Positions 4,111-55,879 of a stretch of 64,000 bases of DNA are shown in pieces. The stretch lies in the sequence record NC_041911.1; one strand, given 5' to 3'. Below the pieces are notes generated by a model, which was given only the letters and a program-made list of their open reading frames with translations, did not search any database and was not told the DNA's origin. The translations under genes and the position numbers were made by a program. Each line of letters begins with the position of its first letter. Within the stretch, counting starts at the first letter, position 1.

Positions 4111-5583
4111 TTATACCTTGGTCGGAGGCTTCGGCTGAGCCTTCGACAGGTCGATCTTGGCCTTCTGTTCAGCGGTGAACCAATACGGAATGTACTCGCC
4201 AGTGCGCATGCGCATGAAGTCGAAGGTCGACAGGAACGGAATGTCTTCGTGGATGCCCTCAGGAGCCCACCAGCCGCGAGTTTCCAGCAGCACCTTCCAG
4301 TCGTACCCCATAGCGATCAGATCGTCGTAGAGTTCCTTAGGAGTGCACAGATACTCGGGAGAGATGTCATGCCACAGATAGGTGATCTGCAACATCTCGG
4401 CGGCGAGGTTCAAGCCGCGCTGCAGTTCGGGGTGTGCGTCGATCTTGCGACGTACCGCGGTACGCGAAAGAGCGATGTCCGGACAGAACTCCAGATAGTA
4501 GTTCTGTACGTTGCCACCCAGTCCCCAGCGCTTTTCTTCTTTGATGAAGTGGAACTCGCTCAGCGATGGCAGCACACCTTCTTGCTGCGATACGATCAGG
4601 CGCACTGCCATGCCAGACGGACCAGACTTACTGCGCAGCTGACGCACCGTTACTTCGTTCAGGTCGGTGTCGCCAGTGAGGTCGTCGTCCTTGTCGCGCG
4701 GGTATTCCGGCGCCTTGGTGGTCTGGTTGCGCAGCGGCGCAGCGTTGTAGCAGTGCCAGCAGTTGTTCATCACGAACGTGAACTTCTCGGGTACACCCTT
4801 GAGCTTCACGCCACCCTGCAAGTGCTGCAGCTTCTTCGGTGGTGGATTGCGCGGGTCCATCGAGAATTCGTTACCGATGTGCGCGGTCATCATCACGTAA
4901 GTGTAGGAACCGCCCGACAAAGCCGGCACTTCCATCAGGAAGCGGTTCTTTTGCAGCCCCTGACGCATGGAAACGGTGTTCGCACCGGATTCACCGAGAG
5001 AGTTCTCGTCCTGCATCTTGATCACGTCTTGCGTGACGAATTCCGACATCGAGTCGACTTCGATCAGAGTCGGCTGGATGATCTTCAGTGGATTACCATT
5101 GCGATCAAGGAACGGAGACTGGATGGAATATTTGCTCTTGTCCTTGATCTTCATGTTCATGAAGTCTTTAACGGTGTCGTACCACTGGTCGCCGTGATAC
5201 ACCGTTTTATCAGTGATCTGCCAGCGACCGGATTCGATCACGTCCTCACCCTTGAACAGCGGGTTGGACGTAGCCATCCGTTGCAAGTGCCACTCGTGGA
5301 TGTTGATCTCGGTGTCATACGTCGACATCCCCGACATCGGACCCATGCGCGCCATGGTCGTCAGACCAAAGTAGTGCATCACAGTGGACTTGAAGTTGTT
5401 GCCGATGCCCACAACGCCAGTCAGGAAGCCCAGACCGCCGTTGAGAATCATCTCCCCGTGCTTGCCCTTCAGGTATTTACCCGTCGGAATGTCCATGAGG
5501 GCGCCAATGTTGATCATGACTTTCACATTTGGCGCTTGTGTGAGGCCCGGCATCAGTGGGGCCGAAGTTTGAGGTGTTGTCAT
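4111..5583 (-). CDS. uvsX: UvsX/RecA-like recombinase (phiKZ gp152-like)
   Basis: GFLTGVVGIGNNFKST variant Walker A, YDTE, IEVDSMS Walker B; start reassigned to MTTPQ. Confidence 0.8.
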   Translation of the reverse strand: MTTPQTSAPLMPGLTQAPNVKVMINIGALMDIPTGKYLKGKHGEMILNGGLGFLTGVVGIGNNFKSTVMHYFGLTTMARMGPMSGMSTYDTEINIHEWHLQRMATSNPLFKGEDVIESGRWQITDKTVYHGDQWYDTVKDFMNMKIKDKSKYSIQSPFLDRNGNPLKIIQPTLIEVDSMSEFVTQDVIKMQDENSLGESGANTVSMRQGLQKNRFLMEVPALSGGSYTYVMMTAHIGNEFSMDPRNPPPKKLQHLQGGVKLKGVPEKFTFVMNNCWHCYNAAPLRNQTTKAPEYPRDKDDDLTGDTDLNEVTVRQLRSKSGPSGMAVRLIVSQQEGVLPSLSEFHFIKEEKRWGLGGNVQNYYLEFCPDIALSRTAVRRKIDAHPELQRGLNLAAEMLQITYLWHDISPEYLCTPKELYDDLIAMGYDWKVLLETRGWWAPEGIHEDIPFLSTFDFMRMRTGEYIPYWFTAEQKAKIDLSKAQPKPPTKV

Positions 5584-53017: not shown

Positions 53018-53208
53018 TGTTACTTTCTCCTTCAGGTAGTGCAAATGAGGTTAGGTGTTACACTTGACTAGCTACCGTGGCTGAGATTTCACCATTCTTC
53101 TTAATTACAGGTTTATCCTCAGACCATACATCAGGGGTCGTAGTAAAAATGTCAGAAACTGCATAAAACCCGAGAGCGCTTGCCCTCGGGGTTTCGCGTT
53201 TTATGCCG

Positions 53209-54135
53209 TTATTGCTCGGCCGCCGCCAGCGCCTTATTCAGCGCAAGGTAGGCGTTGATTTCTGCACGAGCGACCTCTACTGCGGCAGAGAGGATCTGCC
53301 GCTGGATCTGGGACATCGATTCCCACGGAATAACAAACCGCAGTTGCTGGTGTTGGCTTGCCGCTGCATTGTAGGCCTCACGATTTGCCTGCACGGAGTC
53401 GTAATACATCCGGTAGACTTGCTCGGCAGAGATGTCGGGCTGATGAACCACGAGATGCATCGCCGCACGCGAGATGTCGTTATACGGAAGTGGCTTGAAG
53501 ATTTCACCGTTAGAGCCAAAGTTGCTCAGGAAAGTCGACAACGACTTAACTACCAATTCGGTTTGGTCAACTGTGATCAGTCTCGCCACACCTTCCACCA
53601 CCTTCGGGATACAGAACTCGACATAAGCACTGTCATTCTGGTCGTACAGCGCCACACGAATCACCACGTCCCAGTTCGGCTGATCAGGCACACGACGCAG
53701 CGTAAAAGAGCTAAGCACCTCCAGCTGCGGTGCCTGTGGATTGAGTTCTGCATAATAACCAACGAAACGCCGCACCGATTCGGAGAAGGCGCGGACATTG
53801 ACTGCATGCGGTGCCAGCTTGTCCTGCATGATGAGGCCGTGCTTGGCCAGTTCGCGTTTGATGAAACTCTCAACACGAGTCAGCGGGTCCGTAAGCACGT
53901 TATAAAGAACGGTGCTAGGTTCTTCCAGAAGGTGGAGTTTTGCCCACTGGTTGCGATCAACCGTGTTGAGGGTGGCACGCAGCATGCCGCGCAATTTGGA
54001 ATAGTGGCCGATCTTCTTAGCACCATCGAAGATCGATGCCAGAGTTTCGACCTCAACCGGCTTACCGAGTTGCAGGTCGCGTTCCAGGAAATCGCGCAGA
54101 GTGACAGCGCATACGGCAGGGGTATCCATTTGCAT
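53209..54135 (-). CDS. Hypothetical protein
   Basis: 308 aa, AAAGG RBS, followed by a family terminator. Confidence 0.65.
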   Translation of the reverse strand: MQMDTPAVCAVTLRDFLERDLQLGKPVEVETLASIFDGAKKIGHYSKLRGMLRATLNTVDRNQWAKLHLLEEPSTVLYNVLTDPLTRVESFIKRELAKHGLIMQDKLAPHAVNVRAFSESVRRFVGYYAELNPQAPQLEVLSSFTLRRVPDQPNWDVVIRVALYDQNDSAYVEFCIPKVVEGVARLITVDQTELVVKSLSTFLSNFGSNGEIFKPLPYNDISRAAMHLVVHQPDISAEQVYRMYYDSVQANREAYNAAASQHQQLRFVIPWESMSQIQRQILSAAVEVARAEINAYLALNKALAAAEQ

Positions 54136-54225
54136 CCTTTGGTTGTTATTCAGGCGGTGATTACTTTCCTATCAACACTATCTAGGTGTGGATACAAAAA
54201 TAATCAGCGGCATAAGAGGCACATT

Positions 54226-54800
54226 GCCCCAGCTCAAGCCATCTGGCCGCACCCCTACGCTCAGTAAGGGATTTAGGTTGATGGTCGTGGCTGGGGCGTA
54301 TGCTTTTCATTGAGTGGCGCCAATCGTTCAACAAAGTGATAGCTAAGGGAAGTCTTGGAGAGCATCAGTCTACCAAGAGCGACACGAAACTAGCATCGGT
54401 GTCTATTACGTTATTGCCGAGTCCCACACAGGAACTATTACTCGAAGGGGAGTGTATCTGGAGCGAGAATCTCACTCAGTTAGGGCATGGTCATTTACCC
54501 TCAGATATACGCGAGCGCATCGCTGACGTACGCAAGTATGTCTGCAATCAACGAGGCGCCGCTGGGACCGTGAGCGACTGCATGTAAGTCTGAGTGAGAT
54601 ATGCTAGCGTACCTACTTCTCACTGTGCCGAACAGCCCTCTCGCTGGCGCAGTCACCTGCCAGCGTCGATATCGCACGCGGCTGCTCAGGCCGCGGTTGA
54701 AGAGGGCTTTGCATCCAGGACACAGGGTACGAGCCAGCCCGAAATACGGAGCTGGCCAATGAGAAGTAGGAGTTACGCCAGAAGCCCCAGCTCAGATAGC
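54226..54800. ncRNA. Candidate large structured non-coding RNA of unknown class
   Basis: No convincing ORF; perfect helices 54469-79/54590-600 and 54612-22/54760-70 (11 bp each), 54634-41/54701-08, plus nested hairpins; terminal GCCCCAGCTCA repeat. Confidence 0.55.
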
Positions 54801-54887
54801 TGAAGAATCCGAAGATGTTTGTTCTCCTTGTTCTTTGTTGAGTGTTGTGCACTCGTGGTCAAATAATTAGCCACCCCATGTAATTTC

Positions 54888-55139
54888 TTACAGGGATGCT
54901 GTTTTACAGAGATATTCATCAAGCGCTTGTGCAGTGCGATCGATTCTCCATTGATTCAGTAACACGTTTGCCGAGGCAATTGCAACGGCGGGAGGATCTG
55001 GTTCTTCAGTGATCACTCCTGCCGCTAGCTCAGCATCATGTTTAGCCTTAGCACGATGATACGCGAGATGCTTATCAAACGTAGCGCGAGCTGTCAACTT
55101 CGACGGTGTAGCTGATGCTACGCGCCAGTTGGTCGGCAT
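54888..55139 (-). CDS. Hypothetical protein (true start uncertain)
   Basis: 83-aa ORF overlapping the 3' end of the upstream gene. Confidence 0.35.
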   Translation of the reverse strand: MPTNWRVASATPSKLTARATFDKHLAYHRAKAKHDAELAAGVITEEPDPPAVAIASANVLLNQWRIDRTAQALDEYLCKTASL

Positions 55140-55503
55140 GGTCGAAAATCTCCAGCGTGTAGCGCCAGTTCTTATCGCTCTTCGAGCGGGTCAGCTTGGC
55201 GGTTTCCAGACCTTGCTTGAACGCTTGTTTGAAAGCGACAGCATAGTCGATGTAGTAAGCCAGGTCGCGCTCTTGCTTCCACGACAGACCGATGCTGCTG
55301 CGCAGGAAGCCCTGCACGCGGCGCAGTTCCTTGTCCAGAGCAGCGATGTGGACGGTCAGGTTCGTATAATACTCAACGCTCTTGACTTCGAAGATTTCTT
55401 CCTTCACCGGTGCAACCACTTTCGGTGCCGGAGCTTCTTCAGCCATGTTGAAGAAAGCCAGGATAGCGTGGGAGATACGGTCGATTTTGTTCAGTGCATT
55501 CAT
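55075..55503 (-). CDS. Hypothetical protein
   Basis: 142 aa, GGAG RBS, core-like codon bias. Confidence 0.65.
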   Translation of the reverse strand: MNALNKIDRISHAILAFFNMAEEAPAPKVVAPVKEEIFEVKSVEYYTNLTVHIAALDKELRRVQGFLRSSIGLSWKQERDLAYYIDYAVAFKQAFKQGLETAKLTRSKSDKNWRYTLEIFDHADQLARSISYTVEVDSSRYV

Positions 55504-55543
55504 GATAGACTCCAGTACAGTTGTTAGGTTTTGATCGAAATGA

Positions 55544-55879
55544 TCAGATTGCGCTCAAGCAGGTATAAGCAGCCTTGTCCCAGCCAGACCACGTTTGGAT
55601 AGAAACTTCCACACGGGTGCAGCCAGTGCTGCCAACGGGTGTGCGCGTAATCTTCAACTGACTGAAGTCGCGCTCAGAAAAGCTGGTTACTGCATTGTGA
55701 AACGCCATGATGTCTGCCATAGCTTCGGCTTGCAAACCGAAACGACGGGCATAAAAGAGAGCCTGGAGGCCCTCTATGTGCGCAGCCACACGGCCTTCTT
55801 TTACATTAGAGAAAATCTCTTCGCGCGGCAGCTGTTCGATAGCTTCGCGTTCTTCACGATAGAGTACAGACACATCCAT
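55544..55879 (-). CDS. Hypothetical protein
   Basis: 111 aa, AGGAG RBS. Confidence 0.6.
   Translation of the reverse strand: MDVSVLYREEREAIEQLPREEIFSNVKEGRVAAHIEGLQALFYARRFGLQAEAMADIMAFHNAVTSFSERDFSQLKITRTPVGSTGCTRVEVSIQTWSGWDKAAYTCLSAI

Follow-up and report, generated by a model that had tools for sequence, protein, structure and literature searches.

A conserved structured RNA outside the Rfam families, probably carrying a reading frame with a non-canonical start codon, in an intergenic gap of the Ralstonia jumbo phage RP12

The 'hypothetical' gaps of jumbo-phage genomes are usually ignored, and, to our knowledge, almost no non-coding RNAs are known from the nucleus-forming, phiKZ-like jumbo phages, much studied as these are. 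An earlier note on the 64,000-nt stretch of DNA analysed here (sequence record NC_041911.1, referred to below as the window) had singled out one such gap, at 54226-54800, as a candidate structured non-coding RNA of about 570 nt with alternative closing helices. This raises the question of whether the gap encodes a conserved RNA, on which strand such an RNA would lie, and whether it would be non-coding throughout.

Over 53200-55600 the sequence shows 100% identity to Ralstonia phage RP12 (AP017924.1, 280 kb; window position x = record position x + 62000) and to phage RP31. RP12 is a phiKZ-related jumbo phage of Ralstonia, and its replication continues in the presence of rifampicin (PMC5468394), which indicates that transcription is carried out by the phage's own polymerases. 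The annotated neighbours of the gap all lie on the minus strand, and the following reading frames define or concern its borders:

53209-54135, minus strand: ORF106, annotated, left border of the annotated gap
55075-55503, minus strand: ORF107, annotated, right border of the annotated gap
54888-55139, minus strand: ORF of 83 aa, unannotated in RP12, matching FLC1-1B gp101 (E = 7e-6)
54300-54587, plus strand: RP31 ORF103, 95 aa, present in the RP31 annotation only

Syntenic homologues of the gap were found in phages FLC1-1B/FLC4-3B, in one 283-kb IMG/VR contig (L006) and in three Logan contigs (L018, L022 and L023). The FLC1-1B and FLC4-3B Ralstonia phages were reached through a 64-nt match of a distant blastn search to an unannotated syntenic gap, L006 through a motif scan of IMG/VR, and the Logan contigs through an ORF106 profile search; blastn against the phage collection returned RP12/RP31 and FLC only. 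The comparisons were based on six lineages in two clades, one comprising RP12, L018 and L022 (the RP12 clade) and the other comprising FLC, UViG312 and L023 (the FLC clade). Identity of the ORF106 protein among the lineages carrying the element is only 32-55% (33% between RP12 and FLC), and the gaps share invariant blocks, such as the 25-mer GACGTACGCAAGTATGTCTGCAATC at 54525-49, within a conserved core that extends from approximately 54215 to approximately 54831.

A seventh lineage (L030), reached via its ORF107 homologue, has unrelated sequence in the syntenic gap, and the element is absent from it. The search of sequencing runs identified an identical 245-nt piece in one soil DNA run, with no RNA run among those listed. 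Several pattern matches were rejected, including one that consisted of a single motif without alignment (L012) and five in genome contigs (L025-29) that shared the pattern alone, approximately eight such matches being expected by chance. A GC-rich 1.3-kb metagenome contig (L015, 537-563) resembles the element only in 24-27 nt of the invariant block (CGTACGCAAGTATGTCTGCAATCG); about one chance match to a 20-mer was expected, the actual match exceeds the 20-mer query by 4-7 nt, and the match is probably due to chance.

The 83-aa ORF and the end of ORF107 share 65 nt. In L018, L020, L023 and L031, gene calling places ORFs of 78-119 aa at the position of the 83-aa ORF, and its counterpart in L006 (84 aa) has the NVDLLLNQWR motif in common with it. 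Since this gene fills part of the annotated gap, the true gap is 54136-54887, or 752 nt. In every other lineage the plus-strand frame of RP31 ORF103 is interrupted or displaced, with indels that are not multiples of 3, and its annotation is probably spurious.

The 752-nt gap folds better than its dinucleotide shuffles on both strands (z = -4.06 on the plus strand and -6.04 on the minus strand), and the conserved core does so in all five lineages for which whole-core runs were made (z from -1.8 to -4.3 on the plus strand and from -3.3 to -5.1 on the minus strand). The covariance models of Rfam 15, including those for GOLLD, ROOL, OLE, HEARO, RNase P, tmRNA, group I/II introns and ribozymes, gave no match at gathering scores in the whole window; a permissive scan of 54000-55000 with E up to 10 gave three matches of 12.5-13 bits, which are noise, and the homologue L006 had no match to Rfam. 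Furthermore, no tmRNA or tRNA-like structure was found by ARAGORN in 53500-55500. Together with the covariation described below and the invariant nucleotide blocks, these results support the presence of a conserved, highly structured RNA that would lie outside all Rfam families and would be new.

In the part of the core next to ORF106, the following elements were predicted on the minus strand:

54304-54612, minus strand: non-coding structured domain with covarying helices and invariant blocks and no conserved reading frame
54469-79/54590-600, minus strand: long-range helix of 11 bp, covarying
54514-27/54547-60, minus strand: helix enclosing the invariant block 54525-49
54482-86/54497-501, minus strand: hairpin, part of the non-coding domain
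54420-25/54431-36, minus strand: hairpin with a UGUGU loop, six pairs of which four covary
54312-33 with 54400-43, minus strand: multi-helix stack, part of the non-coding domain

In the model-fitted minus-strand alignment (54299-54618), 51 pairs in 11 helices were 95.8% canonical, versus 37-43% when the pairing was slid, and 26 compensatory pairs were counted in the non-coding domain, versus 1-7 in the slid controls; none of 500 shuffles reached the observed values. Deriving the structures and counting the pairs relied on one set of alignments, a circularity that is avoided by a cross-clade test, in which the canonical fraction was 0.59-0.61 versus 0.39-0.46 for slid pairs and, in cells changed on both sides, 0.50-0.53 versus 0.32-0.49. 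All of these covariation statistics come from six lineages in two clades and thus from few independent events. The long-range helix is absent from the consensus because of local misalignment, and inspection by eye found AUCUCACUCAG, AUCUACCUU and ACUUACC, each with its own complement.

The individual helices proposed in the earlier note fared differently. Those at 54353-58/54373-78, 54381-87/54396-403, 54469-79/54590-600 and 54612-22/54760-70 are complementary by eye, as is the repeated GCCCCAGCTCA. Minimum-energy folds contain the helices of the second domain, and the pairings 54226-33/54290-97 and 54469-79/54590-600 covary across the six lineages. The pairing 54418-22/54440-44 is complementary but specific to RP12, the conserved hairpin at this place being the UGUGU hairpin listed above, and the pseudoknot-like pairing 54452-60/54502-10 is likewise complementary but confined to the RP12 clade, a deletion having removed the segment in the FLC clade.

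The left end of the element consists of a hairpin and a promoter-like motif, as follows:

54219-54303, minus strand: long hairpin H1, intrinsic terminator, with core 54226-33/54290-97 and extension 54219-23/54299-303, followed by a U-rich tract
54208-54215, minus strand: TTATGCCG, phiKZ-type TATG promoter of ORF106, 3' boundary of the unit
53159-66, 56021-28, 58708-15 and 48784-91, minus strand: examples of further TTATGCNG sites

The core of H1 is GCCCCAGC/GCTGGGGC in RP12 and GCCCACCC/GGGTGGGC in the FLC clade, a difference that comprises three consecutive compensatory pairs, and in the FLC clade H1 is followed by a textbook U run. The earlier note had regarded this stem as one state of a possible switch, in which 54784-94 would alternatively pair with 54290-97 and close the whole domain. 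This closure is not conserved: the two arms of H1 have changed together in the FLC clade, where the distal CCCCAGCTCA is unaltered and has thereby lost its ability to pair. The terminator-like stem itself is real and appears to end the minus-strand transcript, with no conserved switch partner.

The motif TTATGCNG occurs 24 times in the window, versus 5.8 +/- 2.6 expected, and 18 of the 24 sites are on the minus strand; most sites directly follow a GC-rich hairpin on the strand of the genes. In the minus-strand intergenic regions of RP12, (U)UUAUGC(N)G recurrently stands behind such a hairpin, and the left end of the element (54208-54229) contains the same kind of module, GGGGCAAUGUGCCUC-UUAUGCCG. 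The phiKZ late-promoter consensus is TATG, with the G as start site (PMC4666361). Hairpin plus TTATGCNG therefore looks like a combined terminator and phiKZ-type promoter grammar of RP12, and the module at the left end of the element indicates that a minus-strand transcript would end, and the ORF106 transcript would start, at this place. This grammar of a hairpin followed by UUAUGC may be used in annotating other RP12-type genomes.

The RNA, whose strand the earlier note had left open, is very probably encoded on the minus strand, which is also the strand of the neighbouring genes, because of its G.U pairs, the UGUGU hairpin, the H1/TATG module at the left end and the reading frame described below. 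Where the predictions for the two strands agreed on a pair within a clade, 24 G.U cells were counted for the minus strand versus 11 for the plus strand; overall G.U counts on the unrefined alignment were balanced between the strands. On the minus strand the six pairs of the UGUGU hairpin are canonical in every lineage and its loop is invariant, whereas on the plus strand RP12 and all of the FLC clade would have A.C mismatches in this hairpin, which shrinks to two pairs. One position of the H1 extension is U.G, U-A or C-G on the minus strand, with C.A as the plus-strand equivalent, and the FLC1-1B variant of H1 as well as the L022 and FLC1-1B variants of the long-range helix form wobble pairs on the minus strand only. 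Strand-specific covariance models gave 95.8% canonical pairs, 26 compensatory pairs and a covariation score of 0.535 for the minus strand, versus 92.7%, 24 and 0.441 for the plus strand.

These observations bear on the alternative of a non-coding RNA transcribed from the plus strand, in antisense orientation to the genes on either side, in which 54525-42 would form a hairpin with a GCAA tetraloop. The invariant block would indeed form such a hairpin neatly on the plus strand, three transitions within it would be wobble pairs there, and the plus-strand covariation is also significant. In addition, the absolute fold energy of domain 1 is lower on the plus strand in all six lineages, although its shuffles favour that strand as well. 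Set against this are the helix variants that pair on the minus strand only, the lead of the minus strand in percent paired, compensatory pairs and covariation score, and the presence of the reading frame and of the terminator/promoter module on that strand; furthermore, the whole-core z-scores favour the minus strand in four of five lineages and those of domain 2 in five of six, with domain 1 split three to three. A plus-strand RNA is for these reasons considered quite improbable. A variant of it with a GNRA hairpin and upstream -10/-35 elements was dropped, the 'CATAAG' taken for its -10 element being the reverse complement of the recurrent TTATG motif. Even more improbable is a hairpin element acting at the DNA level, for instance an origin of replication or a site of packaging: the element does consist of densely spaced inverted repeats within a large intergenic gap, but strand-specific G.U pairing, conservation of a frame and transcription signals point to RNA.

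When the stop-to-stop frames of every lineage were compared, exactly one, on the minus strand at 54613-54816, was open in all six. Its features are as follows:

54613-54816, minus strand: hidden ORF of 67 codons, with putative AUC start at 54814-16 and UAG stop at 54613-15
54823-54829, minus strand: Shine-Dalgarno sequence AAGGAGA, invariant in all six lineages

Together with the unannotated 83-aa gene, this conserved ORF shows that the interval is not gene-free as had been thought; the notion of a novel structured RNA stands, and that of a purely non-coding RNA of 570 nt does not, as the 5' third on the minus strand carries the ORF. Overall, the earlier proposal was confirmed in part: its helices are complementary and the region folds better than shuffles, and the gene-free interval and the alternative closure were not confirmed.

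The hidden ORF has 67-70 codons across the lineages, its stop position is conserved, and the other frames over this stretch have at least one stop in nearly every lineage. The putative start codon is a conserved AUC, replaced by AUU in L022, and is preceded by AAGGAGA at a spacing of 7-8 nt, a sequence and spacing that match the ribosome-binding sites of annotated RP12 genes, such as ORF105. Upstream of the AUC, FLC has a TAA stop four codons away and L018 has no ATG, GTG or TTG, indicating that no canonical start is available to this ORF. The AUC/AUU start would also explain why gene callers miss it. AUC and AUU starts are rare and inefficient. The E. coli genes infC and pcnB, with AUU starts and control by initiation factor, similarly combine a strong ribosome-binding site, ideal spacing and an AUY codon; the RP12 protein is unrelated to their products, and regulation by IF3 is something that we infer for RP12.

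Several lines of evidence suggest that the hidden ORF is quite probably translated. Its indels, at least five events of 3, 6, 9 or 15 nt, are all multiples of 3, in contrast to those of the adjoining non-coding domain (1, 2, 7, 8 and 20 nt). Within clades its dN/dS (NG86) is 0.26-0.40, versus approximately 1-1.6 for four of the five other frames; the fifth, an antisense frame that shares the wobble positions of the ORF, has a dN/dS of 0.39-0.60 and is full of stops. Variable sites number 60, 57 and 89 by codon position, the third being highest, an excess that is modest (p = 0.011), and the frame stays open in 5-11% of dinucleotide shuffles, depending on the lineage. The predicted microprotein is basic and aromatic-rich (Arg/Ser/Trp-rich), without a hydrophobic span. 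No relatives were found in Pfam, in PHROGs or in a search of 5.8 billion proteins, with no useful atlas neighbour, and the AlphaFold (AF2) model has no confident fold (pLDDT 58). Translation is graded below certainty because the conserved residues of the microprotein fall in the same places as nucleotide blocks conserved as RNA.

The stretch of the hidden ORF is itself structured as RNA. Its folds comprise 45 pairs, which are 84% canonical versus 36-47% in slid controls, with 10 compensatory pairs versus 0-4, and the same fold architecture is formed in each lineage from different sequences; the pairing 54642-48/54659-65 and the CGCGGC hairpin are kept among the lineages. The pairing and the open frame together imply selection for both on the same nucleotides.

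This double constraint makes it necessary to consider a purely non-coding minus-strand RNA, in which the open frame, the AAGGAGA and the AUC would be untranslated by-products of constraint on the RNA. The coincidence of the LSWGFW and ERAxRHSE segments with RNA-level conserved blocks and helices is as this explanation would predict, as are the free changes of the middle of the protein where hairpins covary and the lack of a canonical start, a protein homologue and a confident fold. What makes it unlikely is the absence of stops in all six lineages, with the other frames stopped in nearly all, together with the indels in multiples of 3 next to a domain whose indels are not, the lowest dN/dS in exactly the hidden frame, the third-position excess and a ribosome-binding-site geometry like that of real RP12 genes.

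The CGCGGC hairpin (54676-54696, minus strand) has an invariant loop, UGAGCA, and a second UGAGC is located at 54790-94. For both copies, the GCUCA of the invariant block GUCGCUCA (54571-78) is a possible pairing partner, and this complementarity suggests a tertiary or alternative contact.

The 5' end of the unit is less sharply defined than its 3' end, and two elements were considered there:

54880-54889, minus strand: conserved AAGAAATTAC, located at the stop codon of the upstream 83-aa gene and beyond it
54840-54854, minus strand: 5' leader hairpin GAGUGCACAACACUC, identical in RP12, L018 and L022

The end of the upstream 83-aa gene has a conserved hairpin with GUAAGAAAUUAC, then a U-rich run, and the position of AAGAAATTAC in a hairpin before a U-rich run indicates that it belongs to the terminator of that gene. 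The middle-promoter motif of phiKZ is AAanTTACc, centred near -24 (PMC4666361), and the AAAUUAC in the GUAAGAAAUUAC hairpin resembles it. The form GTAAGAAATTAC is found in the five lineages whose alignment extends that far (GTAAGAATTTAC in FLC1-1B), the L018 row stopping short of it. Approximately 20 nt downstream of GTAAGAAATTAC, UViG312 and L023 have CTTTTATGAACC and RP12 has TTATTTGACC; at the right distance downstream of AAAUUAC, the same two lineages have UUUUAUGAACC and RP12 has UUAUUUGACC. No recurrence of the GTAAGAAATTAC-type promoter motif was seen elsewhere in the window. It is possible, as a lead only, that AAGAAATTAC may also serve as a promoter element of the unit, and a promoter and start site would be located near 54860. 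At the position of the leader hairpin, another hairpin, GCGA(A)UCC..UCGC, is present in UViG312 and L023, and FLC has none. A scan for sigma-70 promoters and terminators was uninformative and is of little relevance, as RP12 is rifampicin-resistant.

Taken together, the conservation, pairing and coding signals make it on balance probable that the element is a bifunctional minus-strand transcript, in which the mRNA of a microprotein is joined to a stable structured RNA. Phage RNA polymerases would make one transcription unit of approximately 650 nt, from roughly 54860 to 54205 on the minus strand. It would begin with a short leader containing a hairpin, followed by AAGGAGA 7-8 nt before the AUC or AUU, continue with the 67-70 codons of a basic, aromatic-rich microprotein folded into conserved hairpins and, after the UAG, with approximately 310 nt of a non-coding multi-helix domain with invariant unpaired blocks, and close with the 75-nt terminator hairpin. 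Initiation at AUC/AUU would be expected to result in weak translation that is sensitive to initiation factors, and passage of ribosomes through the structured ORF would couple translation to folding. The 3' domain (approximately 400 nt with the terminator) may act as an RNA in its own right, possibly after being processed out like a 3'-UTR-derived RNA, and its invariant loops could bind protein or RNA.

A more specific proposal, put forward tentatively, is that this RNA of approximately 600 nt represents a new bifunctional class of jumbo phages, an AUC-initiated microprotein mRNA combined with a structured RNA that has an activity of its own. Such an activity might be that of a ribonucleoprotein scaffold or regulator acting with its own basic peptide, or alternatively that of a sensor tying RNA folding to the translation-initiation state of the host.

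The independent role of the 3' region has to be weighed against the possibility that the unit is an ordinary small-protein mRNA whose 3' structure acts only in cis, stabilising the mRNA, terminating transcription or insulating the unit from the ORF106 promoter. The unit does end with a terminator beside a promoter, and structured 3' ends are generally known to stabilise mRNAs. However, 310 nt with 25-nt invariant unpaired blocks is far beyond the needs of a stabiliser, and in the FLC clade conservation of the non-coding domain exceeds that of the ORF that it would serve (88-89% versus 71-73% identity, with 67-74% for ORF106), which renders a role in cis alone improbable. Identity of the non-coding domain is 56-71% in the RP12 clade, versus 60% for ORF106, and 57% between the clades, versus 51% for ORF106.

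A small ORF with a weak start in a strongly folded mRNA is also what would be seen in a type I toxin-antitoxin module of the hok type, in which heavy folding keeps a small toxic peptide untranslated. Like hok-type mRNAs, the RP12 RNA has a compact fold round a small ORF with long-range pairing, and a possible anti-SD segment (54763-67) could pair with the ribosome-binding site (helix 1, 80% paired). This helix, however, has no compensatory change, and the peptide is basic, not hydrophobic and without a transmembrane helix; moreover, no signal of an antisense RNA partner was found, there is no homology to hok-type mRNAs, and the element is located in a lytic jumbo phage. A toxin-antitoxin module is accordingly regarded as very improbable.

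The favoured reading, a microprotein mRNA joined to a structured RNA, has parallels in several known systems. In RNAIII/hld, SgrS/SgrT and SR1/SR1P, a transcript of a few hundred nucleotides likewise combines a small ORF with a conserved structured part under stronger constraint than the peptide; the RP12 RNA has no homology to these and differs in being phage-borne, in its larger ORF (67-70 codons) with an AUC/AUU start and in the folding of that ORF. As in the 3'-UTR-derived RNAs of the CpxQ/SroC type, the 3' domain of RP12 is located between a stop codon (UAG, 54613-15) and the intrinsic terminator that it shares with the transcript, but it would yield an RNA of approximately 400 nt, compared with 50-100 nt in that type. 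With GOLLD, ROOL and OLE the RP12 RNA shares a size class of about 600 nt, covarying helices, invariant unpaired blocks and an association with phages. Unlike them, it has no Rfam match, contains a conserved ORF, does not lie beside tRNAs and was found only in six Ralstonia-type jumbo-phage lineages.

The gap of RP12 thus provides a testable family of structured RNAs, in which nucleotides appear to be selected for both pairing and an open frame. Should the RNA domain act alone, it would be a phage addition to the few large RNAs of unknown function, and if the AUC start is real, it would be a natural and conserved non-canonical start.

Some further observations were made at related loci. L030 has at 4667-5460 a different gap of approximately 790 nt, with its own hairpin followed by CCTATGC, which neither covariance model matches. 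The minus-strand end of the other large gap of RP12 (record 129649-130565; L024 1150-2066) has a hairpin followed by TTTTTATGCCG; sequence similarity between that gap and the element was looked for and none was found. In L006 (1164-1470, minus strand) and L023 (3650-3979, plus strand), a small gene is inserted between the terminator of the element and the ORF106 homologue, its N-terminus in L006 being signal-peptide-like (MKKLLAALALGLVLSTQAFA), and this insertion in two lineages indicates that the element is a separate module.
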